IMG/VR virus record: IMGVR_UViG_3300043446_003193
Coordinates: 1-64,000 of that record
Reading direction: 5' to 3' (one strand)
Length of the DNA stretch: 64,000 nt
Shown: in pieces, positions 13,960 to 32,372 of the stretch
Numbering within the stretch: position 1 is the stretch's first letter
Layout: every line of letters begins with the position of its first letter
Translations under genes and position numbers: made by a program
The notes under the pieces: model-generated
Told to the model about the DNA's origin: nothing
The model's input: only the letters and a program-made list of their open reading frames with translations
The model's database searches: none

Positions 13960-13965
13960 ATTTTG

Positions 13966-14053: not shown

Positions 14054-14058
14054 TAATA

Positions 14059-14328: not shown

Positions 14329-14560
14329 AACTTTTATTTTTATTTTTAAAATGAGTTTGTGAGGAATGAATCCAATTAAAAAAGGTTATCCAAATTTCAA
14401 AGAGGTTTGAGTTTATTGAAATAGCTGACAAGAGACCCTAATATTATTGAAGTTTGTTAATAATTCATTTATCTTATTCGTTCATCCGCTTGGTTGCTCA
14501 CAAGTAGTATTGCAAGAATAAACTAATCAATCAGTTTCAAACCCCACTCACTCAATATTT

Positions 14561-14989: not shown

Positions 14990-15130
14990 TTTTTTAGGTT
15001 TTAATATTTTAAATATACAAATAATTTTTCAAATTACCAAATAAAAATAAGCAGGTGTGGAGTCACCTACTTATTTTAGTGAATGAGAAACATCTGAATC
15101 TCTTTGTGGCTGTATCACCAAAGCCCATTC

Positions 15131-15239
15131 GGTGCCAGAGGAGGGTCTGGTTACCCACACGGTGTCCATTTCGGATTCACCACCCACCTAGGAAGGGAAC
15201 GTCTAATAGTTGTACACACTATCATTCCGCCACTCTGGC
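15131..15239 (-). ncRNA. degenerate tRNA-like RNA
   Basis: Acceptor GCCAGAG/CTCTGGC-A, D-arm TGGCGGAA..TAGACG with inserted hairpin, long variable arm, no TTC T-loop. Confidence 0.55.
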
Positions 15240-15244
15240 ATATG

Positions 15245-15331
15245 TGCCCCGAGCAGGATTTGAACCTGCACCCGTATTTTCGCCGGACAGCATTTTAAGT
15301 GCTGCGAGTCTACCAATTTCTCCATCGGGGC
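15245..15331 (-). tRNA. tRNA-Leu(TAA)
   Basis: CAGCA-CT-TAA-AA-TGCTG, long variable arm. Confidence 0.95.
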
Positions 15332-15336
15332 AAACT

Positions 15337-15777
15337 CTATTTTATATTTCTCGCTCTATATGTGTTAGTTTGCGAATGACAATTAGGACAAATTATTCTT
15401 AAATTTTCTAATCTATGATTTGTTCTATCACCATCAATATGGTCTAATTCAAATGAAACTGGTTTATTGTTCCATTTTAGTATACCACACACTTCACATT
15501 TTTCCTGTTTAATACTTTCTTTAATCAATCTAATTCTTAATTTATTAGTTTGATATTGTGGATGTTTTCCATCTAGTATTTCAGAAAGAGCTATTTTATC
15601 AAATCCATCTTTTTTTGGTTTTTTTATTCCTTTTCCAGATTGATTTATTTTATAACATCCCAATTTAACAGCTCTATTTTTTAGAGTATTAAAATGAATA
15701 CCAAGTTCAGCTGCAGCTTTTGCCATTGAAATTGATTTTTTACACATTTTAATTATTTCATCATCATTTACTTTCAT
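15337..15777 (-). CDS. HNH endonuclease with N-terminal HTH
   Basis: CEVCG...FELDHIDGDRTNHRLENLRIICPNCHSQT. Confidence 0.9.
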   Translation of the reverse strand: MKVNDDEIIKMCKKSISMAKAAAELGIHFNTLKNRAVKLGCYKINQSGKGIKKPKKDGFDKIALSEILDGKHPQYQTNKLRIRLIKESIKQEKCEVCGILKWNNKPVSFELDHIDGDRTNHRLENLRIICPNCHSQTNTYRARNIK

Positions 15778-15818
15778 ATTGATTTTAATAATAAGTATAT
15801 GACATGATAGAAAAACAA

Positions 15819-16403
15819 TCAATTGTGTATAACTATCTCAATTGGTTTTCCCAAATAATCAATATCACATTCAGTCCAAAGTTGTTCTGACATAGATATT
15901 GAAATTTTTGCAGAATATGGTAGATTATTATTCTTACCTACCCAACCGGTTAGTTTTCCTTTTTTAGAAAATGTTTCAATCCAATTTAATTTTGAATAAT
16001 CAATTAGTGACGAATCAAACTGAATTAAATAGTATTTTCTAATTCCTTTTTTCCACTCTCCTTTATTCCTACCCAACATTATATATGTATCACAATGTTT
16101 TTTAGAAATAAAATTTATTTTATCTTTTATAGTTTCATGTGAAGTAGTTCTATGACCACTCCAAGTTATACTACCTTTCTTATGATTTATATCCCCACTT
16201 TTGTTTTGATAATTCGTTCCATCTGCTTCCGATACAACATCCGTTCCAACATCATGTCCACCTACATTCCAATTTGAATCCATCCCATTTATACATTGGT
16301 CAAAAATATCTTCCCACAATTCCGCTTTGACAGGAAATCGGTATAACTGATGATGTAACTTTATCTTTTCTTCTATCTTCTTAACAATATCTTTCTTTAT
16401 CAT
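15819..16403 (-). CDS. hypothetical protein, possibly PD-(D/E)XK nuclease-like
   Basis: ELWEDIF...GTDV...YQNKSG spacing resembles a restriction-like fold; weak. Confidence 0.45.
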   Translation of the reverse strand: MIKKDIVKKIEEKIKLHHQLYRFPVKAELWEDIFDQCINGMDSNWNVGGHDVGTDVVSEADGTNYQNKSGDINHKKGSITWSGHRTTSHETIKDKINFISKKHCDTYIMLGRNKGEWKKGIRKYYLIQFDSSLIDYSKLNWIETFSKKGKLTGWVGKNNNLPYSAKISISMSEQLWTECDIDYLGKPIEIVIHN

Positions 16404-16417
16404 ATATAAACCGTTTG

Positions 16418-16491
16418 TGATTCGGAATGGATTCAAACCATTGACCCACAGCTTAGAAGGCTGTTGCTCTATTCAACTGAGCTACCGAACC
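16418..16491 (-). tRNA. tRNA-Arg(TCT)
   Basis: ACAGC-CT-TCT-AA-GCTGT. Confidence 0.95.
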
Positions 16492-16571
16492 TAATAAAAC
16501 ACAATCATCTCACAATCTTCAGATGCTAGCGGTTGCCGAGCTAATTGCATATACAACCGAATTGTGTTTTG

Positions 16572-16645
16572 CGGAACGTAGGGGACTTGAACCCCTGGCC
16601 TCTGCCGTGACAGGGCAGCGTTATAACCAACTTAACTAACGTTCC
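16572..16645 (-). tRNA. tRNA-Asp(GTC)
   Basis: CTGCC-CT-GTC-AC-GGCAG. Confidence 0.95.
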
Positions 16646-16704
16646 AATTTGTAGGTGGGACTAACCTACTTCGGTTTTGTACTTCAACCATTTAAGTCCT
16701 TTTG

Positions 16705-16777
16705 AGCCTCCGGTCAGACTTGAACTGACGACCTGCTGATTACAAATCAGCTGCTCTACCAACTGAGCTACAAAGGC
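16705..16777 (-). tRNA. tRNA-Thr(TGT)
   Basis: GCTGA-TT-TGT-AA-TCAGC. Confidence 0.95.
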
Positions 16778-17001
16778 ATTTAGGAAAGTAGAGGATGGGT
16801 GCGTGGACAACTACTTTTATGATTGGCTTTACTAACCGATAGTAGCGTATTAGATTTTCACTAACTCGTTTTAGCGGGCTACTTTTGTTCCCAATCAACC
16901 TATATGGTCGGTAAGAGGTAGTCACGGCTACTTCTATTCCCTCTTACCTATTCATACACTAACGGCTAAATGTAGCACGACCGAGTGTGATGTATGATGT
17001 G

Positions 17002-17073
17002 TACTCCCAACGGGATTTGAACCCGTGCTACCACTGTGAAAGAGTGGTGACCTAACCCCTAGTCCATGGGAGC
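17002..17073 (-). tRNA. tRNA-Glu(TTC)
   Basis: CCACT-CT-TTC-AC-AGTGG. Confidence 0.95.
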
Positions 17074-17085
17074 GACTGATAAATC

Positions 17086-17117
17086 AAATATACAACTAAT
17101 ATTTTACTTTACCAAAT
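17086..17117 (-). promoter_or_regulatory. internal Bacteroidota-type promoter between tRNA-Leu(TAG) and tRNA-Glu
   Basis: Minus strand TTTGGTAAAG...GTTG-TATATTTG. Confidence 0.7.
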
Positions 17118-17122
17118 ATTTG

Positions 17123-17204
17123 TACCCAAAGAGAGATTTGAACTCTCAAGCCTTTCGGCACTGGTTTCTAAGACCAGCGTGTCTGCCAGTTCCACCATTC
17201 GGGT
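17123..17204 (-). tRNA. tRNA-Leu(TAG)
   Basis: CTGGT-CT-TAG-AA-ACCAG. Confidence 0.95.
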
Positions 17205-17209
17205 TGATG

Positions 17210-17298
17210 CGGAAAGTGTAAGATTTGAACTTACGATACAATTTGATTCGTATGGCAGTTTAGCAAACTGCTGGTTTCAGCCACTCACCCAACTTTCC
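17210..17298 (-). tRNA. tRNA-Ser(GCT)
   Basis: GCAGT-TT-GCT-AA-ACTGC, long variable arm. Confidence 0.95.
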
Positions 17299-17301
17299 GA
17301 T

Positions 17302-17376
17302 TGGGGTGTTAGAACGGTACTGCCCCGTCTTATCTAGCTCCACAAACTAGCGCATCACTTTAATGCTTCAAACACC
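17302..17376 (-). tRNA. tRNA-His(GTG)
   Basis: CTAGT-TT-GTG-GA-GCTAG; atypical T-loop GGCAGTA. Confidence 0.85.
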
Positions 17377-17381
17377 ATTTG

Positions 17382-17451
17382 AGGTTAGTGTTAGAATTGA
17401 ACTAACTCCGTGAGATTTGCAGTTTCACCGGCCGCCACGACCTAACTAACC
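17382..17451 (-). tRNA. tRNA-Cys(GCA)
   Basis: Anticodon loop CT-GCA-AA, short D arm. Confidence 0.85.
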
Positions 17452-17457
17452 ATTTTG

Positions 17458-17529
17458 TAGCCCCTAAAGGATTTGAACCCTTACTAAAACATCCGTAGTG
17501 TTTCGTGCTGTCCGTTACACCAAAGAGCT
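17458..17529 (-). tRNA. tRNA-Arg(ACG)
   Basis: AAACA-CT-ACG-GA-TGTTT. Confidence 0.9.
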
Positions 17530-17534
17530 ATTTG

Positions 17535-17605
17535 CACCCATCGTAGGATTTGAACCCACATCAACGGTTTTGGAGACCGGTATGCTACCATTGCACCAGA
17601 CGGAT
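17535..17605 (-). tRNA. tRNA-Trp(CCA)
   Basis: CCGGT-CT-CCA-AA-ACCGT. Confidence 0.9.
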
Positions 17606-17666
17606 GTATTATATTTTATAGTTTCTATGTCAGTTTTAACCTTACATCATTACTATAAAACATGTG

Positions 17667-17739
17667 TAGGAATAATAGGACTTGAACCTATGACTTTTGA
17701 CGTATCAGATCAACGCTCTACCAACTGAGCTATATTCCT
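17667..17739 (-). tRNA. tRNA-Ile(GAT)
   Basis: TTGAT-CT-GAT-AC-GTCAA. Confidence 0.95.
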
Positions 17740-17744
17740 ATTTG

Positions 17745-17818
17745 TTGGGAATGCAGGATTTGAACCTACGGCCTCTTGCTCCCAAAGCAAGCGCGATACC
17801 TGACTACGCTAATTCCCA
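17745..17818 (-). tRNA. tRNA-Pro(TGG)
   Basis: CTTGC-TT-TGG-GA-GCAAG. Confidence 0.95.
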
Positions 17819-17823
17819 ATATG

Positions 17824-17894
17824 TTGCTCCTCATGGATTTGAACCACAACTAGATGCTCCAAAAACACCTGTGCTACCGTTACACCAAAGAGCA
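17824..17894 (-). tRNA. tRNA-Gln(TTG)
   Basis: GGTGT-TT-TTG-GA-GCATC. Confidence 0.9.
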
Positions 17895-17900
17895 ATTTTG

Positions 17901-17972
17901 AGCGGGTGAGAGGAATCAAACCTCCGTCTCCTACTTGGAAGGAAGGAGTAATAATCATTATACGACACCCGC
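17901..17972 (-). tRNA. tRNA-Gly(TCC)
   Basis: CCTTC-CT-TCC-AA-GTAGG. Confidence 0.9.
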
Positions 17973-17982
17973 TTATGTTTTG

Positions 17983-18054
17983 CGCTTTCCGAGAATTACG
18001 ATATCTCGCCCCCATCGTTAACAGCGATGTGCTCTGCCTCTGAGCTAGGAAAGC
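17983..18054 (-). tRNA. tRNA-Asn(GTT)
   Basis: CATCG-CT-GTT-AA-CGATG. Confidence 0.9.
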
Positions 18055-18401
18055 TTTTGTTTTTCTATTTCATCATGTATTTCCATGTGACAATTACAAC
18101 ATACTAAAATACATTTATCTAATTCTTTTTTCATTTTTTCCCAACTTATACTAGGTCTTGATAAAGAATATTCTTTTTCACTTGGTTCTAAATGATGGAA
18201 TGCTAATGCTCTATTACATTTATCATATCCACATTTTTCACATTTACCACCTTTGTATTCAATCGCTTTGATTTTCATTTTATCTCTACGATTAGATACT
18301 GAAATAGATGCACATTTTTTACATCTATACGCACCATCTACTCTTAATACAAATTCAGTTTTTCCATGTGTTTTACATTCTTTAATTTCTGTCTTATTCA
18401 T
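18045..18401 (-). CDS. HNH endonuclease
   Basis: CKTHG, CKKC, CEKCG...LAFHHLEP...CILVCCNCHMEIH. Confidence 0.85.
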   Translation of the reverse strand: MNKTEIKECKTHGKTEFVLRVDGAYRCKKCASISVSNRRDKMKIKAIEYKGGKCEKCGYDKCNRALAFHHLEPSEKEYSLSRPSISWEKMKKELDKCILVCCNCHMEIHDEIEKQKLS

Positions 18402-18461
18402 AATATTCTTTATTATAAATATATTTGATTAACATTTTAAGTTAATCATTTATAGTTTTTG

Positions 18462-18542
18462 TGGGAGCAGAAGGACTTGAACCTACGAACTCAATGAGGG
18501 CGGATTTACAGTCCGCTGCAATTGCCACTATGCGATGCTCCC
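18462..18542 (-). tRNA. tRNA-Tyr(GTA)
   Basis: GCGGA-CT-GTA-AA-TCCGC, variable arm. Confidence 0.95.
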
Positions 18543-18581
18543 AAAACAAAAAACCCCAACTTAATTAAAAGTCAGGGTTTT
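18543..18581 (-). terminator. intrinsic terminator (putative attenuator 3:4 hairpin) immediately before tRNA-Tyr
   Basis: AAAACCCTGACTT-TTAATT-AAGTTGGGGTTTT followed by TTGTTTT. Confidence 0.8.
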
Positions 18582-18613
18582 CCATAAATTATTTAAAATA
18601 GACGTTCCTAACT

Positions 18614-18682
18614 TTACATACGAATACCACCCCAAATCTGATTCGGTGTACTACAAAGTGTATGTAATGTTAAGTTTTTCAT
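18614..18682 (-). CDS. putative attenuator leader peptide MKNLTLHTLCSTPNQIWGGIRM
   Basis: Manual translation; A-rich start context; overlaps alternative hairpins and precedes the terminator and tRNA array. Confidence 0.7.
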   Translation of the reverse strand: MKNLTLHTLCSTPNQIWGGIRM

Positions 18683-18699
18683 TTTTATTTTTTTTTAAG

Positions 18700-18970
18700 T
18701 AATTCAATTTCAAAATACGCCATCCAAGTCATGCTCTGGTTATTATCAGCCTCATCAAATTACTTTGTACACAAGCAGAGTTTAGAGGGAGGCGGTAACT
18801 CTTTGTAGTGTACTGCTACTAATCCGGCAATCTTTTATCGTCTCTGATTGCATTTTTATTGTGAAAATCCTCCCTAAAACACTTATTACCAATTTTATTA
18901 TATCGTTCTATCTTTTAGGTCATTTAAACGAACCGACTGTTGAATAAGAAACAGCCAAAAGGTTGACCAC
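18700..18970 (-). ncRNA. unassigned structured RNA region
   Basis: AGGGAGG/CCTCCCT, GCAATC/GATTGC, GTACAC/GTGTAC, GGTCA/TGACC and GGCTGTT/AACAGTC complementarities; no long ORF. Confidence 0.4.
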
Positions 18971-18974
18971 GAAA

Positions 18975-19047
18975 GAGCGAATGTGGGAATTGAACCCTAT
19001 CTTCCACCCCGTTAAGAGTGGTGTGCTTCCGTTACACTATATTCACT
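18975..19047 (-). tRNA. atypical tRNA with 8-nt anticodon loop (CTTAACGG); identity undetermined
   Basis: Acceptor AGTGAAT/ATTCGCT, D-arm GTGTAACGGAAGCAC, stem CCACT/GGTGG, T-loop TTCAATT. Confidence 0.6.
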
Positions 19048-19049
19048 TA

Positions 19050-19935
19050 AAATGAGTGAGATTACCTCATTGGGAGTACCAACTTTAGAAAGATTATTTG
19101 TTTCCTTTCCTATCCACTACCTTTTGAGTAGTACCGATACAATGTGGATGATTTGAGACTATCAGTCTTTGAGTTACGTCTTACTCTCTTTATACTCCGC
19201 TTCTTCAAATCTGCCGACCTGATTAAACCTTGCGGGTTTAGAAGTTTTTCCAAAGAATCACAGACCTCTTGCGGAGGTATCGTGGCAAGGAACAGCTCCC
19301 TACTATGTACACACCTTTCGTCCGTAACTGGCAAACACTTATGCTTTTATTTAAATTGAATAATCAAATCCGCATTTGATAAAAGGGTTGGTTTGTAGAT
19401 GGGTTCAGGTAGCGGTTTGCCAACCAGCTCCCTCAACTTTTGGCCGAGAGAATACTGAACTACCCGATGTGTTATCGTCAACACCATTTTTCAAGTCATC
19501 TTCATTAATAGGGATTGGTGTCCCACATTAAAGGTTAGTAACAACACCACTTGTACACCAACATACCTTACGTCCTTTCGGATAGCTTGGTTTTAAGACC
19601 ACTCTTAAATTGAATACCGCAATAGTGTAAAGTGATTAGCCTTACATTTCTTACAGGTATTCTATGGGTTATTCTTATTGTTCTTCCGAACTCAACCGAA
19701 GTATCTACTTACCCCGGTTATTCAAACTCTTCCGATATAGTGTTACCCTTTCGTACAAAGCTCAAATAATATCCCACTTGCATACTTAAGTTATTCTCTC
19801 CTTACGGGGAGAGTAACCGCAGATTGTGTAAACCTAACAATCCACTTTATCCTACTTTCGTAGTTTATTTGACGACCATATGCGGCCGTTGTTTACTATG
19901 TAGAAAAATCTACTATGTAAAATATTTTCAATCTT
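19050..19935 (-). ncRNA. large structured ncRNA, GOLLD-like
   Basis: ~870 nt with no convincing ORF, GC richer than flanks, many GNRA-capped hairpins (CCTCC-GCAA-GAGG, AAACCC-GCAA-GGTTT, CTAC-GAAA-GTAG); size and tRNA-cluster setting fit GOLLD. Confidence 0.55.
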
Positions 19936-19956
19936 TTAAAGAACTATTCGTTTTAA

Positions 19957-20342
19957 TAAATATAACAATAATTTTTTTTATTACCAAATATTTTTAAAAC
20001 TTTTTTTGTAAACTTGATAACGAGTATCTTTCATCACCTATTGTTTCTCATTTACTTATGTAATATACGATAATTTTTTTAAACTACCAAATATATTTTC
20101 AAAAAACTTTTAAGATGTTTGGTATCCGGCTTTCTTCCCTATTGGATAGGTCACTCAATCGGTTTTATTATTTGATGGCTTCAACCAATCATCTTAAATG
20201 TAAGATACGATAATTTTTTCAAACTACCAAATCTTTTTTATTTTTTTGTTGAACATTTTCGGCTGTGTTTACTTACACCATTTAATACTTCCTACTTCTG
20301 AACAACTTTGTAAAGATACGAAAACTTTTTCAAATTTCCAAA
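19957..20342 (-). promoter_or_regulatory. four tandem Bacteroidota-type promoters separated by short hairpin-forming units
   Basis: TTTGG(T/A)A-N-TAT(A/C)TT motifs at ~19957-19988, 20060-20091, 20200-20231 and 20311-20342. Confidence 0.7.
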
Positions 20343-20351
20343 TCTTTTTTG

Positions 20352-20424
<73 letters not shown>

Positions 20425-20432
20425 ATATTATG

Positions 20433-20832
20433 TGGAGATGAGGGGATTTGAACCCCTGTCTTACAAAGAACTAATAATACCAGCATATCACACGTTTATT
20501 TCAGTTTCTACTGAAAAAATATTTAATTTAGTTAAAGTGAGTTTAAGGGTTCAAATTAAAAAATAACTCTTCATAACGGAGTCTCACTGTCCTATACTTT
20601 TAGGTGTATTAAACCTTTGTAGACACTTCTGTTACTAGGCGTATGTGTACCGGCCCTATTGTTGTGATTAGGCTGCTACAGCGTAATCAGCACCTACAAA
20701 CGCCATTAAATCGTTGTAAGTCATTGTTGACATTTCGTCATTTATTGTTTTGTACATAGTTTAAAGAGGTATAGTACATATCTCTACGTGTGGTACTACT
20801 ATTTGCATTGCAATCAATTCCATAGCATCCCC
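20433..20832 (-). ncRNA. ssrA: tmRNA
   Basis: 5' GGGGATGCTATGGAATTGA, 3' T-arm plus CATCTCCA (G3:U70); tag frame 20745-20668 INDEMSTMTYNDLMAFVGADYAVAA*. Confidence 0.9.
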
Positions 20833-20947: not shown

Positions 20948-21379
20948 TCACTTATATATTAACTTAAATCCTAATGCTTTTGCTACTTTTTGTGATTTTA
21001 TGTTCCAATCATCTATTTCAATCTGTATTTTACCCCTTGTATGTTCCTTTATAACCAAATACAACAAATCTATAACTCCCAGTTTTCTTAAAGATGTAGG
21101 TTTTTTAGAAAATACATTATATAGGTAATATTCAGTATTACTATCTTCCCTTAACCAACAATAACAAAATGGATTTTCGTTTTTATATCCAACAAACATT
21201 TTTTCACCTTTTTGGATTCTATTCATAGCTTCTCCAACATCAAACATCCCATCCCAAACTATTTCTGAATTAAACAAATCTATACATTTTTGTATTTCGT
21301 TTTGATCAGTTGTTTCCTTTATTTGTATATCCGTTTTTCTATCAACCAATTCCGAATGATTTAATAAAAACTCTTTCAT
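20948..21379 (-). CDS. GNAT-fold acetyltransferase-like protein
   Basis: YLYNVF...RKLGV...IDDWNIKSQKVAKALGF. Confidence 0.6.
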   Translation of the reverse strand: MKEFLLNHSELVDRKTDIQIKETTDQNEIQKCIDLFNSEIVWDGMFDVGEAMNRIQKGEKMFVGYKNENPFCYCWLREDSNTEYYLYNVFSKKPTSLRKLGVIDLLYLVIKEHTRGKIQIEIDDWNIKSQKVAKALGFKLIYK

Positions 21380-22110
21380 TATAAAAATGTTTTTACTGAT
21401 TTTGTAATATCAAACCTGTCGTAAATTTTATTGTATTTTTCAATAAAATTATCGGTTAGTTTTAAATTACATTCAAAGTGTTGACTTGAATTTATCTTTT
21501 CCAATTTAAAATCTATTCCCAATTTATCACTCACCCATTCTTCCATTTCGGACATCTTATTAAAATCAAACCATTTTATTTTAGGATTATGATTGTGATA
21601 TGCAGAATGTGGTAACAATAATACACCAAGTATTCTTTTCAAATAATCATTATCGGCTGTAAGTCCGAATCGGTTTATAAACTCCGTTACAGTTTTATCT
21701 ATTTCATCTCTATCATTAATACTATATACATCATTTGAATTATAAAATAAAATATCATTTTCATTCAATTCTTTCATAATATGGAAAGAATGTATATCAC
21801 CCGACATATACACTTCATCTAAACAATGTTTCCACATAGAAATAAATCTTTCATGTCTATTCCTGTTTACTGCAATTATATCATAGTTGTAACCAAATTT
21901 TTCTTCTAAAAATACTATGGATTCATGTCCATGCACTAACATATCGGCAATATCTTCATTATTTATATTTGGATCGTAAACAAATTCCTTATTATCCAAT
22001 CTAGGTGTTATATGGTTTATAGAAATTCCTCTTTTGATACAAGAAATTACAAATGATGTTGAAGCACATCGCGGTAAATTAATATAAATAAATTTATTAC
22101 CAACTAACAT
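21379..22110 (-). CDS. sulfotransferase-family-2-like protein
   Basis: FIYINLPRCASTSF (PAPS loop) and VNRNRHERFISMW (RdP..R..S). Confidence 0.65.
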   Translation of the reverse strand: MLVGNKFIYINLPRCASTSFVISCIKRGISINHITPRLDNKEFVYDPNINNEDIADMLVHGHESIVFLEEKFGYNYDIIAVNRNRHERFISMWKHCLDEVYMSGDIHSFHIMKELNENDILFYNSNDVYSINDRDEIDKTVTEFINRFGLTADNDYLKRILGVLLLPHSAYHNHNPKIKWFDFNKMSEMEEWVSDKLGIDFKLEKINSSQHFECNLKLTDNFIEKYNKIYDRFDITKSVKTFL

Positions 22111-22128: not shown

Positions 22129-22209
22129 TTAAGAATTTGCAGAAACTATCAAAGCTCCAATGTTTGCCATTGTTTGATTAATTAAATTCTTTTCATTTAT
22201 TTCTATCAT
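22129..22209 (-). CDS. 26-aa peptide MIEINEKNLINQTMANIGALIVSANS
   Basis: Manual translation; fills the gap between the Hint protein and the sulfotransferase. Confidence 0.45.
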   Translation of the reverse strand: MIEINEKNLINQTMANIGALIVSANS

Positions 22210-22218: not shown

Positions 22219-23742
22219 TTAACGAAGTGGACATTGTGGACCACATCCTGATTTACAAAGTCCTTCTGGTTCGCAACAATATGGGTATGATTTTGTGCAA
22301 GAGAAGCTTGAATAACAACTTCCATAATAACTATACGCACATCCAGGTAGGACGTTATGTTCAATTGCTACAAAAGAGGTACTATCTTCTGCAGAACCTC
22401 TGGTTAAAAATAAGTGTTCTCTTTCCACCGTTATTTCCCATCCACCAAAAAATTCTTGTACATTTTCTATACTTTGAACCTCTTTTTGAATAAAGGACGG
22501 AGTTTCGGAATTTGATGTGTCTAATAGGATAACACTATCACCCACTTTTAATCCCGTTTCTTCTGGTGATGGTGATTTAATTGTTAAAAATCTAACCTCT
22601 CCATTTTTAATACAAAGATATTTTGAATTTTCAGTATCTAACCAATCCGTACCATCTGTAAAAATTATCTTTGTAACATTACACCACATATCAACTCTTT
22701 CTTTATTCAAAACCGTGTTTGTTGAATATGTAGTACCCGCTTCTAACTCAGAAAAATTTATTTTATAATTTGCAAGTTCTACATCATTGTTTACTTCAAA
22801 TGGATTTGGTATATCAATCGTTTTAATAACATCACCCACTTCTAATTCTTGAGCAGTTTTTAAACTACCATCCCCCATTACCACATAATCACTATCCTGT
22901 AATTTAGGAATTTTTATGGAATCATCAGATGTTAGATATTTTCTTCTACCTTCAATCAATTCAAAAGTGGTTGGGTCATAAGTTGGAAGCGTTTCTAGGG
23001 AATCATTACAAAAAACCGTATAACCTCCTATTGATATTGATTCTAAATTTGGTGGAAATAATATATTTAGACTTCTTTTTAATTGTAAGTGTCCATTATA
23101 TAACTTATCTGGATTATACAAAAACTCCATTAAAAAATAATCTTCTGTTACATTTTGTAAAATAGTATCCAGTTCATCGCGAGTTGTTACTTTATAAAAT
23201 TTTGGATACTCCGCTTTGTTATAATCAGGGTATCTATATTTTAGAATAAAGTTTGGATGTCCACCATTATCATTGATATTTGTAATATTGTGTAATAGGA
23301 CACCAACTTGGTTTCTATAAGCAAATTGACACGCATATTCCTGATTTTGTATCAATTTCATATATCCAACCTTATCTCTACAATATTCATCATCCACCAC
23401 TGCACTCATATCATAAGCACTTCTAATGATTAGGATATCATCACTATCTTCAATGAAAGGGATTGTTGTAGCACCTAAATCAATACGAACAAATTCATAT
23501 TCTAATCCTAAATCATCGGTCAATATTCTAAGTTCATTATCTAAATAAGTAAAAGAACCGAGATATGTGATTTTATTAAAACACTTTTGAATGACAAATT
23601 CTTTCAAATCCGTTAAATCCAAAGAAGAATCGTTACTTTCTAATTTATATCTATGCCACCCAATACCAGTGTTGATTTCAATGGGTCTTAATCCTCCATC
23701 TTTATCGTACATAAAATCCGATCCAACTAATACGGTTCTCAT
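22219..23742 (-). CDS. ATP-grasp-like / Hint-domain / Cys-rich C-terminal fusion protein
   Basis: IEIN motif near the N-terminus; Hint-like VVMGDGSLKTAQELEVGD...EITVEREHLFL...IEHN; then a 44-aa tail with 8 Cys. Confidence 0.65.
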   Translation of the reverse strand: MRTVLVGSDFMYDKDGGLRPIEINTGIGWHRYKLESNDSSLDLTDLKEFVIQKCFNKITYLGSFTYLDNELRILTDDLGLEYEFVRIDLGATTIPFIEDSDDILIIRSAYDMSAVVDDEYCRDKVGYMKLIQNQEYACQFAYRNQVGVLLHNITNINDNGGHPNFILKYRYPDYNKAEYPKFYKVTTRDELDTILQNVTEDYFLMEFLYNPDKLYNGHLQLKRSLNILFPPNLESISIGGYTVFCNDSLETLPTYDPTTFELIEGRRKYLTSDDSIKIPKLQDSDYVVMGDGSLKTAQELEVGDVIKTIDIPNPFEVNNDVELANYKINFSELEAGTTYSTNTVLNKERVDMWCNVTKIIFTDGTDWLDTENSKYLCIKNGEVRFLTIKSPSPEETGLKVGDSVILLDTSNSETPSFIQKEVQSIENVQEFFGGWEITVEREHLFLTRGSAEDSTSFVAIEHNVLPGCAYSYYGSCYSSFSCTKSYPYCCEPEGLCKSGCGPQCPLR

Positions 23743-23743: not shown

Positions 23744-24007
23744 TTATATTAAAGATTTTTTCTTTTTTAAATTAAGGAACTTTTCATCTACCGAATCCCA
23801 TTTACCTTTAGGACATGCACCCGTTACTGGTGAAAACACTTTTGCCTTTAGAGCACATCCACAAACGGTACACTTATTAAATGGTTTTGATTCTTTAAAC
23901 TCACAACCATTACAAATTTGGATTCTTTCAGATGCAAGTTCGGCTTGAGAATCATTAGGGTTAAATGAAATTCCCCAAGCAGTAAATATTTCTACTATCT
24001 TATTCAT
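23744..24007 (-). CDS. small Cys-rich metal-binding protein (DUF6171-like)
   Basis: RIQICNGC...CTVCGC...ACPKGKW. Confidence 0.7.
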   Translation of the reverse strand: MNKIVEIFTAWGISFNPNDSQAELASERIQICNGCEFKESKPFNKCTVCGCALKAKVFSPVTGACPKGKWDSVDEKFLNLKKKKSLI

Positions 24008-24047
24008 ATTATATAACTATTTGTATTTATAAATATACGGAAAATAA

Positions 24048-24569
24048 TTAAGATTTCCAATGTTTATTAGGTCGTTCCCACCAAAAGGTCAAGTCCTCAT
24101 TCGTAGCATCATAATAATCACCTACAAAATCAGATTTAAAACGAGAGTGGATGTTTTCGTATAGAGCAAGTGTAATCAACTTCTTAGATGGTTCTAATCT
24201 TTTTCTAACCCAATCTATAATGTGTGAATAGTTTCCACCTCTAATCACCCCAGCTTCAACAAATATAATGGATTTAAATTGAAAGTATTTTGCATGTAAT
24301 TTAAAATTCTCATACATTTCATCCATATACTTTTTATTCCAAACTTCATCCGGATATGGAACTTCAATACCAAATCCATCACATACTTCACCATCCCACG
24401 ATAAATGGTGTCTTAACCACATACCCACATGGGCAGAATAATCGGTAGATACGGTAACTATAACCGAATTAGATGCATTGAAGCCGGCAGCCAATAATTC
24501 ATCCCCTAACTTATTTGTTAGTGATATCTCATTCTCAATCGTAATTAATTTTTCTGGAAGCACTATCAA
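24048..24569 (-). CDS. phosphoribosyltransferase-like protein
   Basis: IIFVEAGVIRGGNY resembles a degenerate PRPP loop; LTFWWE C-terminus. Confidence 0.55.
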   Translation of the reverse strand: MIVLPEKLITIENEISLTNKLGDELLAAGFNASNSVIVTVSTDYSAHVGMWLRHHLSWDGEVCDGFGIEVPYPDEVWNKKYMDEMYENFKLHAKYFQFKSIIFVEAGVIRGGNYSHIIDWVRKRLEPSKKLITLALYENIHSRFKSDFVGDYYDATNEDLTFWWERPNKHWKS

Positions 24570-24604: not shown

Positions 24605-25240
24605 CTATTTAAATTTTAATCCTGTAAGTTTTTCTATATCCTCTCTCAAAACTTCATGCGATTTCAATCCTGATGGTTTGTCTGCCACATTATCAAATGA
24701 AAAGAAAAACCATTCACCTGTTTTTTTAATATGTACAACTTTCCAACACTCTTTTGGAACTGCTACTTTACCTATTCTTTTAATCTCACCAACATTCCCC
24801 GCCCAAATGTGAACTGAATCATCTTTGACTGCCCATTCTCTTGTTGCAGTTTCCAATGATTTCCAATCTCCTGCATTTAATGAATGATATTGAGCTGCCA
24901 TATTACTCATATAGAAACATTCAATTTGAACGTCTGCAGTTTGACATTGATTAGATGCCGCAGGAGACATATGTCCTCTATCAAATCCACTTCCTACATA
25001 ATCTGCTTTAATATCAGTTAATTCAACCGCTTGTGGGTCTGGTTGGAATGCATCTTTTCTTGGTAATGGATTTGGACAACCAACTTTTGCTTTGGTTTCC
25101 CACCACTCTACCATTACTGGATATCTTTTTGATTTACTGAAATGTGATGTGTAGTTTGTATGTTTTAATACTACGATGTCTTGAGAGAATGTAACTACAA
25201 ATAAAAATAACAATGTAGTCAATAACAATAATTTTTTCAT
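24605..25240 (-). CDS. secreted DNA/RNA non-specific endonuclease (NucA/EndG family)
   Basis: Signal peptide; DRGHMSPAA, FYMSNMAAQ..LNAGDWKSLE. Confidence 0.9.
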   Translation of the reverse strand: MKKLLLLTTLLFLFVVTFSQDIVVLKHTNYTSHFSKSKRYPVMVEWWETKAKVGCPNPLPRKDAFQPDPQAVELTDIKADYVGSGFDRGHMSPAASNQCQTADVQIECFYMSNMAAQYHSLNAGDWKSLETATREWAVKDDSVHIWAGNVGEIKRIGKVAVPKECWKVVHIKKTGEWFFFSFDNVADKPSGLKSHEVLREDIEKLTGLKFK

Positions 25241-25697: not shown

Positions 25698-27182
25698 TTA
25701 TAATACCATTCTACTACCTATAAGGAAATTATGTAAAATTGGTGTACCAGGTTGTGTGTTTACACTTGCTCTATAATTGAAACTAAATCCAAATCTTTTA
25801 CTAATTTTATAATCAAACGAACTACCCAACATAAACCCATAATGTCGTGTAACTAATGTATTTCCAGTTTTTGCATTATATGATATTGGTGAGTTCATTC
25901 CAAATACCTGTGGTGATATTGTAAGTTTTCTACTATATTGATAAGGTTTAGTCCAAAACGCCACAACAGAAGTCATTAAGTTGTAATTATACTTACCATC
26001 TGCATCTTTCATCAATAGGTTTATTAATCCCACATTATAACCATAAGTTCCTCTTTTCATATCAGGTTTAATCCAAGTATAACCCAACATATTCATATAA
26101 GTTCCTTTGAGGTATGCAAATGTAGTTCCGTATGAATGTATTGCTTTTAATTGTCCTTCTTCAAATTCCATTTTAGTATATCCACCACTTAATGCGTATT
26201 GGTCCAAAGAACTCCATATCATTCCGTTTACTGATACACTACTTTCTCCGGTCATACTTGCTCTACTCCAACCCAATCCTAATATTGCGTTATATTTTCT
26301 ATCTGGTCCTTCCGATGTTGTTAAATCCGATGAAACTAATTGTGGGTTAAGATTGATTTTCTTTTCTTTTTTCTTTTCATCTTTTTTATCATCCTTCTTT
26401 TCTTCTTTTTTGTCCTCTTTCTTATCTTCCTTTTTTTCTTCTTTCTTTTCATCGGACTTTTTCTCTTCCTTTTTTTCCTCACTCTTACTTTCGGATTTCT
26501 TTTCTTCAGTTTTGCTCTCCGATTTACTCTCACTCTTTGACTCAGATGATGAAGAACTACCCTCACTCTTTGTTTCGGTTTTACTCTCCGAAGATGAAGA
26601 TGAAGAACTGCTTGAGCTTGAAGATGATGAACTACTACTGCTACTACTTCCAGATGATGATGAACTACTACTTGCAGGTGGTGTAGAAGATGTTGATGAT
26701 GTAGATGCGGTTGCTCCACTACTTGCCGCAGAACTACTTGCCGTAGATGCCGATGAACTTGCTGCCGAACTTGCACTACTACTTGCTGCGGTTGATGCCG
26801 ATGAACTCGCTGCGGAAGAAGCTGCTGAACTTGCCGCGGATGATGCAGCTGCTGCGGCTGCTGTTGATGCTGCTTGATTTACTGTCGTTTGGACTGTTTG
26901 TGTTACTACTTGATTTGTAGGACACCCCATTGTTTGATACTTTGTATAAGTTGCGTTTAACCACAACTGGGTTGCGCCTGATTGAACTTCAAATGGTGTG
27001 AATGTCTTTACCTCATTGTAGAAAGAAACGGTGGCATTTCCGTTTATAATCGTTGTAGTCGCTATTTTTGCTTCACCGGTACACTTATCTATAAAAGTTT
27101 GAGTATAAATCTGCCCTTCGGCTTTATTTGCCGTTAGGATTGTAACAATTAATATCGTAAGAGTAACAATCCATTTTTTCAT
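25698..27182 (-). CDS. secreted protein: small N-domain, Ala/Ser-rich and Lys/Glu-rich linker, C-terminal beta-barrel-like domain
   Basis: Signal peptide, low-complexity linker, amphipathic strands with aromatic girdle. Confidence 0.7.
   Translation of the reverse strand: MKKWIVTLTILIVTILTANKAEGQIYTQTFIDKCTGEAKIATTTIINGNATVSFYNEVKTFTPFEVQSGATQLWLNATYTKYQTMGCPTNQVVTQTVQTTVNQAASTAAAAAASSAASSAASSAASSSASTAASSSASSAASSSASTASSSAASSGATASTSSTSSTPPASSSSSSSGSSSSSSSSSSSSSSSSSSSSESKTETKSEGSSSSSESKSESKSESKTEEKKSESKSEEKKEEKKSDEKKEEKKEDKKEDKKEEKKDDKKDEKKKEKKINLNPQLVSSDLTTSEGPDRKYNAILGLGWSRASMTGESSVSVNGMIWSSLDQYALSGGYTKMEFEEGQLKAIHSYGTTFAYLKGTYMNMLGYTWIKPDMKRGTYGYNVGLINLLMKDADGKYNYNLMTSVVAFWTKPYQYSRKLTISPQVFGMNSPISYNAKTGNTLVTRHYGFMLGSSFDYKISKRFGFSFNYRASVNTQPGTPILHNFLIGSRMVL
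26340..26880 (-). repeat. low-complexity coding repeats (ASSAASS, poly-Ser, KKEEK)
   Basis: Imperfect tandem codon repeats inside CDS 25698-27182. Confidence 0.8.
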
Positions 27183-28920: not shown

Positions 28921-30123
28921 TTAATTACCTTTTGATGGAAATCTAGTCCATCCATTAGACCATATTGGTTTGGATAGTGTTTCCATTTCAGCTTTTGTAT
29001 AAGATACCTCTTTGTTACCTTGTGATAAAGCTTTTGTTTTCATATCTGCTGCAGTAAATACAGTAGAAGTAGATTTGAAGTTTAACAATGGGTCAAATGC
29101 CTGAATTTCATTGTTTTCAAATTTAGAAACCCCATCTTTGTAAGCTTGTGCAGTTTCGTTACTTTCAATTGAAAACCCACCTTTTTGATAACCAATGATT
29201 TTTGAGTTAGTCATTGTAAATTGAGTTGCACGTCTCCATCTTAAACCTAAATTATGGTTTGCTAAAGAAGCTGCATCAAATGGTCCAACTAAAATCATAT
29301 TATCCAATTTAGGATGTGTGAATGGCTGTGCGGTTGTACCTGTTCCATCATTATCACACTCCACACCATTTCCAGCATCACCAGCATCTACGAATTGTGG
29401 GTCTCTCTTTGATACTGAATAAGATACCGAACCTCTATATCCAAAATCAAAATCGTAATCATCATCAGCAGTTGCGTATGCGTATAAGTTTTTAGCGTTT
29501 ACAGTTCCACCAAAGAATTCAAATGCATCATCGTTAGCGTAAACAGTTTGGATATACTCTAAAGTTGTTCCACTACCTACACCACCTAATGTTAATCCAT
29601 TGATTTCAGAGTTTGGCATTGCTGCAATTCCTGCATATTCAATTCTAACATATTTTAGGATACCACTATTATCCAAATCGTTAGTTCCACCATAAGGTCT
29701 ACCAATACCACCTTCAATTGTTGGTTCAGAAGTTCTATTGGTAGTTGCTCTACCTAATATAACTACACCACCCCAATCACCAGGCAATCTTTCACCAACA
29801 GCTTTACCAGATGTAAATACGATTGGTTTTGCTGCAGTTCCTTCTGCGATTATTTGTGCACCTCTTTCAATAATTAATGCACCTTTCTCAGCGATATCGG
29901 ATACGATTGTTGTACCTGGCTGAATGATAAGTTTTGCACCATCAATTACATAAACATATCCTTTTAAGGTCCATGTTTTATCTGATGTTAAAGTTGTTGT
30001 TGTGTTAATGTTACCACTCAAAATTGTTGATGATGGTACATTTACAGGAATATCAGTTCCACCTAATTCTTTTTTGCAACTGAATAATCCCAATACTAAA
30101 ATAATTCCTAATAGTTTTTTCAT
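28921..30123 (-). CDS. Bacteroidota-type beta-helix lipoprotein (TBDT-associated)
   Basis: Lipobox LFSC; PGDWGGVVILG, SGILKYVRIEYAG, DDAFEFFGG repeats. Confidence 0.75.
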   Translation of the reverse strand: MKKLLGIILVLGLFSCKKELGGTDIPVNVPSSTILSGNINTTTTLTSDKTWTLKGYVYVIDGAKLIIQPGTTIVSDIAEKGALIIERGAQIIAEGTAAKPIVFTSGKAVGERLPGDWGGVVILGRATTNRTSEPTIEGGIGRPYGGTNDLDNSGILKYVRIEYAGIAAMPNSEINGLTLGGVGSGTTLEYIQTVYANDDAFEFFGGTVNAKNLYAYATADDDYDFDFGYRGSVSYSVSKRDPQFVDAGDAGNGVECDNDGTGTTAQPFTHPKLDNMILVGPFDAASLANHNLGLRWRRATQFTMTNSKIIGYQKGGFSIESNETAQAYKDGVSKFENNEIQAFDPLLNFKSTSTVFTAADMKTKALSQGNKEVSYTKAEMETLSKPIWSNGWTRFPSKGN

Positions 30124-32372
30124 AAATTCAAATTTAATGTTAATGAAATTGTTTGTTCGTTGTTTGTTTTTATAAGATTTCTCTTTGTTTGTAACTTTTG
30201 ATAATAGATTGATGGTTGCGCAAATACATCGCCTATTGCCAATTTTATTTCCCCTTTATTTAATTTATGTAAAAGAGTTATATCCAATACATCTCTGCTG
30301 TTTTCAAAAATGTCTGGATAACCCTGAAATCCTATTGCTGATATTCTATCACCTACTCTATTGTAAGTTATGTTAATTGTATTTTTCTTTTTGTGAATAT
30401 TAAATCCACTATTTAATACATAATTTGATTGTCCCTGTAATTGTCTTTTAACTCCTTTAACATTTACTTCAGAATTCATCACAGAAGCGTTTGTGTAAAC
30501 ATCAAACCAATCATTTAATTTTTTACGAAATTCCAATTCAACACCATAAAGATATGCGTTATTGGGATTTGAATAAGTTAATAATAGATTAGATGGAACT
30601 GAACCATCTGCTACTATTTGCTCAATTGGTTTTATAAAGTTTTTACCAAAAAAAGATACTGAAATATTTTCTCCCGCGTTTGGATATAATTCCCATTTCA
30701 AATCTAAATTGTATATGTCAGATTTTTCCAATTTAGGATTACCCAATAATTGTGCATTTCTTACAAAATCATAATAAGCAAAATTAGCTACTTCTCTAAA
30801 CTCAGGTCTTGCTAATGTTTTACTTAATGAAAATCTATATTTTGTTTTTTCTAAATTGTAAGAAAGATTTAGTGATGGTAATACATCCAAATATTCTCTA
30901 TTAACTTTAACTTTACTTCCACTAAAATCTGCAGTAGATACATCAAATAGATTATATTCAGTTCTAACGCCTGTATTTAATTTCCATAAACCAAATTCTT
31001 TGTCCAACATTACATACCCACTACCTAAATCAAAATCAGCAGTATATTTGTCTGTGTTGTTTGTTATCTCATCTAACATATCAGTTGAAAGATAACGAAA
31101 TATTCTTGCATTAAATCCTCTAATCTTTTTTAAGTATCCACCACCAATCTTAATATCACCAAACGATTTATTAACATTACCATTAAAACTATTTTCATCC
31201 ATTACACTCCAAAAACGATATGTATCTCTCCATGCAGTTGTATATGGTTCGTTTACTCCTAATGATTTTGTAATTGGATTAACTCTATAATCAGGTTGTT
31301 CTCTGAATATAAAATTGTATCCTAAATTAAAATCCCAAGTTTTAAGTTTACCATCAAATTGAGAATTAACTACAACATTGTTTATATGGTTAGATGAATT
31401 ACTATGAACATTTTGAACATTATCATAGTTTTCACCATTTCTATTCATATAAGAATCATCGGCTTGATAGTTCACCAATGTTTTCCAACTATATCGGTTC
31501 TCACCTAAATAAGTTAAATTCAATAAACCATTTGCGGAAAATCTTTTTGAGAATAAAGTATCTCTATAATCGTATGCTAATTCAGTTGAAGATTGATAAT
31601 CTATTCTATCTATATAATTCAGTCCATAAGAATTTCTAATTGTTGAACTGAATAAAGCGTTGAATTTGTTTTTCTTTACACCAAATGATAGGCCACCATT
31701 TAAGTTTGGAGATGATGTAAACCCTTCTATGATTGGATTACTTAATTGTTTTGTGTATAACCTCTTATCACCATTACTACTAATACGATATCCGTAAGTA
31801 GATGGGAATGTGGAAGGGAATTCAGTAGCTTGAACTAACTTAAAATCTTTAAGAGATGAAACTGAGCCCCAACCACTTCCCAATGAGATATTAAAAAAGT
31901 TATCGGATACTTCTTTTGTTGAAACTTGCACCAATCCACCACTCCAATCGCCAGGTAGATTTGCCGATGCCGATTTAGATACTATAATATTATCAATTAA
32001 TGCCGTTGGAATTAAATCAAAAGAAAATGCTCTCTTATCAGGTTCAGTTGATGGTAGAAGGGTTTTGTTTAACATAGCAGAATTATAACGGTCTGCTAAT
32101 CCTCTTACTAATACAAACTTATCGTTTTGTATAGTAACACCACTTACTCTTTTAAGTGCATCCCCAACATTTCTATCAGGTGTTTTTTTAATAAAATCAA
32201 TGGATACACCATCCGAAACTACTGATGCGTTACGAATGGTTGATATTACAGCTACTTCAGTAGATTTTTTACCTGCTGAACGGACTGTAACCGTTGATAA
32301 TTGTTTGGAAAATAATGTGTCTTGGGAATATGTTACAAATGGAAGTAACAATAACAATAAAAAAATCCTCAT
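30120..32372 (-). CDS. TonB-dependent outer-membrane receptor
   Basis: Plug ALKRVSGVTIQ..VLVRGLADRY..SKSASANLPGDWSGG; barrel strands RPEFRE, GNPKL.KS. Confidence 0.9.
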   Translation of the reverse strand: MRIFLLLLLLPFVTYSQDTLFSKQLSTVTVRSAGKKSTEVAVISTIRNASVVSDGVSIDFIKKTPDRNVGDALKRVSGVTIQNDKFVLVRGLADRYNSAMLNKTLLPSTEPDKRAFSFDLIPTALIDNIIVSKSASANLPGDWSGGLVQVSTKEVSDNFFNISLGSGWGSVSSLKDFKLVQATEFPSTFPSTYGYRISSNGDKRLYTKQLSNPIIEGFTSSPNLNGGLSFGVKKNKFNALFSSTIRNSYGLNYIDRIDYQSSTELAYDYRDTLFSKRFSANGLLNLTYLGENRYSWKTLVNYQADDSYMNRNGENYDNVQNVHSNSSNHINNVVVNSQFDGKLKTWDFNLGYNFIFREQPDYRVNPITKSLGVNEPYTTAWRDTYRFWSVMDENSFNGNVNKSFGDIKIGGGYLKKIRGFNARIFRYLSTDMLDEITNNTDKYTADFDLGSGYVMLDKEFGLWKLNTGVRTEYNLFDVSTADFSGSKVKVNREYLDVLPSLNLSYNLEKTKYRFSLSKTLARPEFREVANFAYYDFVRNAQLLGNPKLEKSDIYNLDLKWELYPNAGENISVSFFGKNFIKPIEQIVADGSVPSNLLLTYSNPNNAYLYGVELEFRKKLNDWFDVYTNASVMNSEVNVKGVKRQLQGQSNYVLNSGFNIHKKKNTINITYNRVGDRISAIGFQGYPDIFENSRDVLDITLLHKLNKGEIKLAIGDVFAQPSIYYQKLQTKRNLIKTNNEQTISLTLNLNL

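Follow-up and report, generated by a model that had tools for sequence, protein, structure and literature searches.

On the minus strand of the window, by which we mean the first 64 kb (64,000 nucleotides) of the complete 209,443-bp IMG/VR virus record IMGVR_UViG_3300043446_003193, an open reading frame (ORF) at 22219-23742 encodes a protein of 507 amino acids (aa) that consists of three parts. A domain predicted to be a circularly permuted ATP-grasp, similar to acid-amine ligases (residues 1-276, 22915-23742), is followed by a Hint domain (residues 277-463, 22354-22914) and by a hypervariable tail of 44 aa with eight cysteines (residues 464-507, 22222-22353), which is the predicted released peptide with a calculated mass of 4759 Da. 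The record comes from freshwater metagenomes, no RNA run containing the locus being listed, and includes a gene for a major capsid protein of the T4 type (Gp23, E 9e-78). The GC content is about 31% and one strand carries every gene; window coordinates given below refer to the minus strand.

The ORF, its Ile-Glu-His-Asn (IEHN) motif and the tail had been described in an original prediction for this stretch. All three are present as quoted, and the layout is widespread. A word-indexed search returned at least 662 unnamed full-length homologs of 490-520 aa at 90% clustering; at 50% identity, an exhaustive HMMER search gave at least 254 clusters, of which 90 have E <= 1e-30. All are unnamed and of phage or metagenomic origin, and the contigs bearing family genes reach 335 kb. 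Because pattern-scanning the genomes of 185,579 representative species of bacteria and archaea brought up no cellular relative, we read the family, as far as can be seen, as phage-only.

Neither Pfam nor PHROG holds a model for the three-part family. Searches of Pfam, PHROG and PDB sequences with the single 507-aa protein gave no match, and the same is true for tblastn against GenBank phage records. Full-text literature searches (Hint with ATP-grasp and phage; Hint with precursors of RiPPs, peptides synthesised by ribosomes and then modified post-translationally; intein-like Cys-rich phage proteins) retrieved no report of such a protein. Each domain type is known already, and so is variable cargo released by Hint domains, from polymorphic toxins and from bacterial intein-like (BIL) domains. 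Three features appear to be undescribed: a permuted ATP-grasp fused to the Hint, cargo in the form of a peptide-sized Cys knot, and an obligate partner of the DUF6171 type with exclusively phage distribution. It is a new architecture made of known parts.

The Hint domain and its predicted cleavage site

The AlphaFold2 (AF2) model of the whole protein was built on an alignment of 96 diverged family members (A2, identities down to 22%), which is also the source of all counts out of 96 given here. It has a mean predicted local distance difference test (pLDDT) of 88.4 and a predicted template modelling score (pTM) of 0.86, and the prediction is poor only at residues 465-507. Over residues 277-460 pLDDT is about 90. 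When this part of the model (residues ~276-461) is compared with PDB by Foldseek, the top match is BIL2 of Tetrahymena BUBL (6y75, E 1.8e-8, TMt 0.73). Upwards of 40 inteins and Hedgehog (1at0) come after it; nearly all of the 51 matches at E <= 1e-3 are Hint structures. Many of the matched AFDB clusters are "Hint domain-containing", PT-HINT and RHS proteins. The family profile, which involves no structure prediction, finds among PDB sequences the KlbA intein of M. jannaschii (2jmz, E 3.4e-8) and then BIL2, other inteins, a BIL domain and Hedgehog. One relative, P0177, has a sub-threshold PT-HINT match over the Hint region (21.3 bits, the cut-off being 27.7). The Hint fold that had been proposed for this segment is therefore predicted at high confidence, and at the fold level the segment is a member of the Hint/intein superfamily.

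The catalytic positions of inteins and their roles, for example those of the cyclising Asn (G:7) and the penultimate His (G:6), were taken from PMC4031507. The Hint-like segment begins near P279-K280-L281 (PKLQDSDYVVMGDG), with no Cys, Ser or Thr at intein position 1, and ends with I460-E461-H462-N463, after which the tail starts. Absence of the N-terminal nucleophile, pointed out earlier for this protein, turns out to be family-wide: position A:1, Cys or Ser in inteins, is occupied by Pro, Tyr, Val, Leu, Ala or Phe and by Cys or Ser in 0/96. The block-B His is gone as well (B:10 is Ser in 69/96 and His in 0/96). The +1 residue is Ala, Val, Pro, Leu, Tyr or another, with Cys in only 1/96; the first Cys of the cargo comes at +2 to +5 in 79/96. 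Block F has no conserved Cys among the 96. Blocks F and G themselves are kept, and the terminal His-Asn, also noticed before, is nearly perfect, with Asn at G:7 (N463) in all 96 sequences and His at G:6 (H462) in 95 of them. Position F:13, an assisting His, is His in 49/96 and Asp in 26/96.

Neither the combination expected of class 1 inteins (Cys or Ser at A:1 with Thr-x-x-His in block B) nor the +1 Cys, Ser or Thr of all intein classes, to which class 3 adds a Cys at F:4, is a feature of this family. From the signature of type A BIL domains, the C-terminal His-Asn and the lack of a +1 nucleophile are present and the N-terminal Cys is absent. The losses at A:1, B:10 and +1 thus leave no room for splicing of class 1, 2 or 3, nor for an N-terminal thioester; classes 2 and 3 in particular were ruled out since Cys+1 is missing, and so is a Cys at F:4. 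The residues retained are exactly those for Asn cyclisation. As no N-terminal thioester can form and the His-Asn is kept, we suggest that the Hint acts as an asparagine lyase, with its predicted site at the codons of H462-N463 (22354-22359) and N463|V464 as the scissile bond. That His-Asn should be conserved almost perfectly beside the stretch that varies most can hardly be accounted for unless the bond is chemically used. Judging from this conservation, we infer that cleavage at N463|V464 by Asn cyclisation is probable.

Two known systems come closest. Firstly, type A BIL domains and Tetrahymena BUBL BIL2 (6y75/6tmm) are the best structural match of the Hint part and share its C-terminal His-Asn; without a +1 nucleophile, cleavage rather than splicing is expected (PMC4031507). 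In BILs, nevertheless, both the N-terminal Cys and the block-B His persist and a thioester can form, whereas the phage Hint, having neither, could perform only the Asn-lyase half-reaction, and BILs are not fused to a ligase. Secondly, the KlbA class 2 intein (2jmz) is the best sequence-profile match and likewise has no Cys or Ser at position 1. Class 2 inteins splice via Cys+1, Thr B:7, His B:10 and Asp F:4 (PMC4031507); the phage family differs by having Cys+1 in a single sequence of the 96, His at B:10 never, and a variable F:4.

The cysteine-rich tail and other cargo

The tail of the window protein has the pattern C-x7-C-x5-C-x6-CC-x5-C-x3-C-x3-C. Cysteines make up 8 of its 44 residues and only 6 of the remaining 463 (Fisher p = 3.5e-6). 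A variable C-terminus behind a conserved His-Asn had been anticipated, and the comparison of close homologs bears it out: with its Cys positions left aside, the tail has a mean column identity of 0.28, as against 0.68 for the N-domain and 0.66 for the Hint. The tail is hypervariable, yet the positions of its cysteines are fixed.

We surveyed the cargo of 218 full-length family members, 178 of them short-tailed and 40 with longer cargo. Short tails measure 5-68 aa (median 40.5) and comprise 175 unique sequences. Eight cysteines are found in 110 of them, six in 58, ten in 4, twelve in 1 and four in 1; the number is even in 174, odd in 2 and zero in 2. Among tails from the IMG/VR loci it is even in 78/78, and His accounts for 0.3% of the residues. 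The spacings seen most often are C-x4-C-x5-C-x6-CC-x3-C and C-x5-C-x5-C-x6-CC-x5-C-x3-C-x2-C. In composition the tails show enrichment of Cys, Gly, Tyr and Pro and depletion of Asp, Glu and Lys, which makes side-chain cross-linking of the graspetide type unlikely. Scanning 67 tails singly against Pfam for known Cys-rich families (knottins, defensins, EGF, hevein etc.) produced only single insignificant matches, the best hit of a tail profile in PDB had E 0.13, and in the ESM Atlas neither the tail nor a 539-aa cargo retrieved more than low-score leads. Even parity, the existence of a six-Cys class and the scarcity of His favour disulfide pairing over four-ligand metal sites, at least in the clade of the window protein. 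A disulfide knot rather than a metal site is what we would moderately favour.

A non-cleaving protein has to be considered at this point, in which the Hint would have degenerated to a structural or docking role and the tail would be a permanent zinc- or iron-binding module. In its favor, the N-terminal nucleophile, the block-B His and F:4 are all lost; some tails do contain CxxC pairs, the tail would remain reduced in the cytoplasm, and the AF2 model (pTM 0.86) is compact and two-domained. From a decayed Hint, however, one would not expect Asn to persist in 96/96 and His in 95/96 at the last two positions, right where the sequence becomes hypervariable. Tails with six or eight Cys are essentially free of His, and the six-Cys class (58/178) is indivisible into four-ligand sites. 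Nor would a cofactor module be swapped for unrelated cargo of 700-1240 aa or for 7-aa stubs. We regard this explanation as very improbable.

The 40 members with longer cargo carry 71-1242 aa behind the same His-Asn, and the alignment of relatives of 600-1667 aa to the 507-aa query stops there. Relatives with large non-peptide cargo had not been foreseen by the original prediction. BACON domains, a putative glycan-binding module, occur in the cargo of P0177 and P0185. Long-cargo members P0185 and P0149, distant relatives whose cargo measures 540-1240 aa, belong to a different myovirus type and lie directly upstream of tail sheath genes of the Phage_sheath_1 family (loci L089, 150-5153, and L090, 6001-8994). 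This location and the BACON domains raise the idea that the cargo is a surface or adhesin module of the particle: cleavage would expose an amine, and the ligase would couple the cargo to a carboxylate of a virion protein or of the DUF6171 partner. Even Cys parity suits extracellular stability, and a T4-late-type promoter box upstream of the operon (see below) would fit too. The window genome and most T4-like relatives, on the other hand, place the gene among tRNAs, a nuclease and sulfation/oxygenase genes and not among structural genes. Attachment to the virion seems improbable to us.

Contig IMGVR_UViG_3300042892_005961 (211 kb; loci L011 and L066) harbors two paralogs about 38 kb apart that are 46% identical, one with an eight-Cys and the other with a six-Cys tail.

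In six relatives (including P0200, P0176, P0193, P0225 and P0235; loci L005/L006 and L091-L094) a second Hint stands behind a Cys-rich stretch of 27-35 aa. This one is canonical: it has Cys1, TxxH in 5/6, a terminal His-Asn and no +1 nucleophile, is 134-152 aa long and is recognised by Pfam. It sits 2-6 residues before the C-terminus of the tail, and its bearers are scattered among single-Hint relatives of the same clade. Since the peptide and the remnant of 2-6 residues together rebuild an ordinary single-Hint tail, the second Hint is best read as an intein/BIL-like insertion. The double-Hint layout is thereby weakened as proof of two-ended excision of the peptide. The second Hint may be a mobile BIL/intein-like element within the peptide-coding tail, or else a second processing device. 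It was rejected as a substitute for the DUF6171 partner, which is found in 3/5 double-Hint loci. Directly after the gene, all five of these loci (L005, L091-L094) contain a conserved ORF of 37-46 aa ending in ...K-x-KHL.

The N-terminal ligase-like domain

The ATP-grasp character of the N-terminal domain had been graded weak. The predicted structure allows an upgrade, as regards fold and Mg motif only, to a circularly permuted ATP-grasp resembling glutathione synthetase and GspS. Modelled alone from the 96-sequence alignment, the domain reaches pLDDT 95.4. Foldseek searches of this model in PDB and in the Swiss-Prot part of AFDB return only circularly permuted ATP-grasp acid-amine ligases (E 6e-6 to 1e-3), namely E. 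coli YjfC/YgiC, eukaryotic (homo)glutathione synthetases, glutathionylspermidine/trypanothione synthetases, Rv2411c-type proteins and Cp1B, the ligase of the E-64 pathway (PMC12568646). In a VIA search, which is independent of Foldseek, the ten best matches are all permuted ATP-grasps (Z 7.1-8.3) covering model residues 1-276, whereas canonical ATP-grasps (TTLL, TTL, LysX/ArgX, RimK, DcsG, Ddl, PurK) do not begin to align before about residue 55. Alignment over the full span with permuted enzymes and over a part with canonical ones argues for a permutation that shifted the Mg-binding hairpin to the N-terminus; in the predicted structure the hairpin precedes the N- and central subdomains, as in the permuted branch.

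This putative Mg2+/ATP-binding hairpin, D9-x12-E22-x-N24, lies at the extreme N-terminus (23671-23718). D9, E22 and N24, which would make up the acidic/Glu-x-Asn metal triad, are invariant in 96/96, R107, D117 and R223 are likewise invariant, and K168 is kept in 95/96. When the N-domain profile is searched against PDB sequences, all six sub-threshold matches are ATP-grasp enzymes aligned at the Mg hairpin. The triad also lines up with the hairpins of biotin-carboxylase and Ddl. By hhalign, D9, E22 and N24 fall on D102, E115 and N117 of YgiC, in the same register as the VIA superposition (model residue 1 corresponds to chain residue 94). The Pfam models RimK and ATPgrasp_ST match 5/96 and 3/96 members, respectively, always at E >= 0.012. 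The structural scores are moderate (Z ~8, TM 0.4-0.5 by query). We therefore describe the N-domain as a predicted permuted ATP-grasp fold with an intact metal triad and not as a proven member of GSP_synth; the assignment would go to the level of fold plus Mg-binding motif only.

Permuted ATP-grasp ligases (glutathione synthetase, GspS/trypanothione synthetase, YgiC/YjfC, Cp1B) are the sole structural matches of the whole N-domain, and they too have a D/E...E-x-N hairpin ahead of the remaining fold. They are larger (370-600 aa, compared with 276 aa here) and none is fused to a Hint.

Because these structural relatives use small molecules, it is conceivable that the Hint is a mere self-cutting linker between a free small-molecule ligase, producing for example thiol peptide or polyamine conjugates, and a variable cargo which the ligase never touches. 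With cargo of 7-1240 aa and unrelated folds, one ligase could hardly recognise all of it. There is also a precedent for the layout in polymorphic toxins with Pretoxin-HINT (PF07591), where a conserved N-terminal part and a Hint precede variable C-terminal modules and the toxin tip is presumably released. The Hint stands directly before the highly variable and presumably released cargo in both cases, but the N-terminal part is here an enzyme instead of a secretion/repeat scaffold, the protein is phage-encoded, and the usual cargo is a Cys-rich peptide of 30-55 aa instead of an enzymatic toxin. What speaks against a simple linker is that the fusion of ligase, Hint and cargo is constant in the 254 clusters and that we found no stand-alone N-domain, from which functional coupling can be argued; besides, the partner gene is kept with every cargo type. 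We consider the linker explanation unlikely.

The partner gene, neighboring enzymes and a model of the module

Directly upstream of the 507-aa gene, its stop codon 1 nt away from the ATG, is a gene (23744-24007) for an 87-aa Zn-ribbon-like protein of the DUF6171 type. This near-obligate partner, like the sulfotransferase-like neighbor described below, was not part of the original prediction. Neighbors were counted in 80 IMG/VR loci as genes recurring within about 6 kb. Homologs of the partner are present in 78/80 of them, on the same strand and usually directly downstream, and they also accompany the distant long-cargo relatives P0149 and P0185. The protein has invariant cysteines (CxxC...CxxCGC...CP) and a conserved Lys-rich/hydrophobic C-terminus, K-x-K-T-[LI]-[LI]. 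It gives weak Zn-finger matches in PDB and corresponds to PHROG 13558. The window copy has no match to DUF6171 (PF19668) at E <= 1. The homolog in locus L090 does pass this model (31.8 bits; cut-off 27), its alignment to the partner profile has a probability of 99.8%, and it is through this homolog that the partner appears to belong to DUF6171. A TATAAATA box at 24024-24031, 17 nt upstream of the partner ATG, agrees with the T4 late-promoter consensus; this is no more than a match to the consensus, in an AT-rich window where the motif is just mildly enriched.

Directly downstream of the 507-aa gene, a sulfotransferase-like protein of 243 aa is encoded (21379-22110), whose family occurs in 63/80 loci. 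Its only PDB match is heparan-sulfate 2-O-sulfotransferase at motif level (E 0.15). The aligned motifs are PRCASTS with the 5'-phosphosulfate-binding (5'-PSB) loop, HxH, and RD...S with the 3'-phosphate-binding (3'-PB) segment, and they coincide with the family-invariant H60, H62, R83 and S91; a homolog has a faint Sulfotransfer_2 match. The kinase of adenosine 5'-phosphosulfate (APS), encoded 25 kb away from the gene in this genome (48400-48846), adjoins it in 35/80 related loci (Pfam above cut-off) and could supply 3'-phosphoadenosine 5'-phosphosulfate (PAPS) to the sulfotransferase-like enzyme. More loosely associated is a GNAT-like gene of 143 aa (20948-21379, weak Acetyltransf_3 match) that has a homolog close by in 12/80 loci, and in L002 as well.

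Related loci contain a larger enzyme island. 2-oxoglutarate (2OG)-Fe(II) oxygenases are found in 69/80 (Pfam above cut-off), a radical S-adenosylmethionine (SAM) enzyme in 42/80 (just below cut-off), a second sulfotransferase-like family in 38/80 and an SGNH hydrolase in 33/80 (both weakly supported), and a carbamoyltransferase in 32/80 (above cut-off). The whole 209-kb genome of the window has none of the oxygenase, radical SAM, carbamoyltransferase or SGNH genes of the island; only the partner, the sulfotransferase-like gene and the distant APS kinase are retained. Tail class and accessory enzymes show no correlation either. Radical SAM enzymes, 2OG oxygenases and carbamoyltransferase were consequently rejected as obligatory tailoring partners for this phage. 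With these genes missing, the minimal module comprises the three-part protein and its DUF6171 partner, joined in most cases by the sulfotransferase-like enzyme, and the larger island is accessory. The architecture and the neighboring enzymes are compatible with a RiPP precursor fused to its enzyme.

The surroundings of the module contain several further genes. Just upstream of the partner are a 173-aa protein of PHROG 29004 (24048-24569) and an Endonuclease_NS gene with an N-terminal signal-like segment (24605-25240, E 4e-33), neither of them conserved beside the module in relatives. A mini-ORF of 26 aa (22129-22209) separates the Hint gene from the sulfotransferase-like gene. Just downstream of the module, 13965-20832 holds 19 tRNA genes and one odd tRNA-like call; a gene resembling transfer-messenger RNA (tmRNA), with an unusually long predicted tag, lies in this block (20432-20832). 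Genes for an HxGH nucleotidyltransferase-like protein and a DUF2061 membrane protein, which adjoin the module in 36/80 relatives, are here at the opposite end of the linear record (203889-204456 of the full genome, G000) and would be some 27 kb off if the genome is circularly permuted.

We propose the following model. The precursor would fold inside the infected cell, where the Hint works as a single-turnover asparagine lyase: Asn463 is converted to a succinimide and the N463-V464 bond is broken. A 44-residue peptide with eight cysteines and a new alpha-amino group would thus be freed. Once outside the reducing cytoplasm, for example at lysis, the peptide, a scaffold of 6 or 8 Cys with hardly any His, Asp, Glu or Lys, would probably form a knot of three or four disulfides. 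Its sequence would be free to differ among phages. The tethered ligase would use ATP to make a single amide bond, its substrate being the cargo or the DUF6171 protein encoded alongside; since its structural relatives activate small thiol peptides at their C-terminal carboxylate, the likeliest acyl donor is the C-terminus of a peptide. The partner and, in most relatives, the sulfotransferase-like enzyme would be parts of the same module.

As an overall explanation, a self-processing precursor, whose Hint frees the Cys-rich cargo and whose tethered ligase acts on cargo or partner, is the best we can offer, and on balance we lean towards it. The individual steps are not equally secure. The analysis shows the folds of the domains, the conservation of residues, the variability of the cargo and the linkage of the genes; cleavage, the redox state of the tail and the substrate of the ligase are inferences. 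Being tethered to Hint and cargo, the ligase would act on the cargo or on the partner, but this part of the model is tentative.

Several observations weigh against the proposed precursor. Concerning the Hint, the window protein passes no Pfam Hint model and has no match at E <= 1 to Pretoxin-HINT PF07591, and F:4, usually Asp in inteins, varies among the 96. Certain inteins cleave at the C-terminus only in strict coupling to earlier steps (PMC4031507), of which the Hint here is incapable. The case for cleavage is built on conservation of catalytic residues. Concerning the tail, its region 465-507 is modelled by AF2 at low confidence, and a distant clade has a zinc-compatible CxxC...CxxC spacing. 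The precursor has no signal peptide, so that a disulfide knot would have to wait until lysis. Relatives with BACON-bearing cargo of 700-1240 aa adjoin tail sheath genes, which fits a virion protein better than a diffusible peptide. Concerning the ligase, the 507-aa protein passes no Pfam ATP-grasp model, and profile-profile comparison with E. coli YgiC aligned only the 23-residue Mg hairpin (E 0.14 and 0.08), the YgiC profile being shallow as all homologs returned were at least 77% identical. With no significant profile match, the ligase assignment stands on predicted structure. Finally, the fusion is the sole tie between ligase and tail.

An extended form of the model can be imagined, in which the module is a protein/peptide ligation device that works without ubiquitin-type enzymes. 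Cleavage would bare the alpha-amine of the cargo beside a single-use ligase, yielding either a head-to-tail cyclic cystine-knot peptide or cargo joined to the conserved C-terminus of the DUF6171 partner, and the tails would be phage-specific extracellular ligands (e.g. for signalling, receptor blocking or virion decoration). This is a speculation to which we give little credence.

Borosin-type RiPP precursors such as OphMA combine a modifying methyltransferase and a C-terminal core peptide in one polypeptide and need a separate protease for release. The phage protein may be an analogous case in that enzyme and C-terminal peptide are co-translated; unlike borosins, it would have its own means of release, the Hint, within the chain.

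If cleavage is real, then a large unannotated family in lytic phages would use Hint as a built-in, cofactor-free releaser of hypervariable Cys-rich peptides, on the same chain as an ATP-dependent ligase. Hint-mediated release of cargo would reach beyond bacterial polymorphic toxins into viruses and down to products of peptide size, and a minimal permuted ATP-grasp ligase would be added to those known. Knotted peptides made by phages, possibly sulfated or otherwise tailored, would represent an extracellular or virion-associated class in freshwater phage-host systems of the Bacteroidota type. A C-cleaving Hint without N-terminal chemistry and a naturally diversified peptide scaffold are also possible tools for protein engineering.

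Other genes of the window bear on the host and the phage type. It encodes three outer-membrane proteins: a SusC/RagA-like TonB-dependent transporter of 1093 aa (42686-45967; CarboxypepD_reg and OMP_b-brl_4, E 9e-62), a 750-aa receptor with Plug and beta-barrel (30120-32372), and a 494-aa protein (25698-27182) with a signal-peptide-like start, a long low-complexity stretch of Ser, Lys and Glu and a beta-rich C-terminus. They suggest a Bacteroidota host and remodelling of its envelope. LCCL and C-type-lectin-like domains are found in a protein of 886 aa (34467-37127), next to a 549-aa protein with a weak cohesin-like match (37131-38780), and an endolysin-like gene combines PG_binding_1 with GH19 (39742-40578). 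A CobS/CobT-like pair (AAA+ and cobalamin-biosynthesis-type; 5477-6751 and 6945-9236) resembles that of marine T4-like phages.

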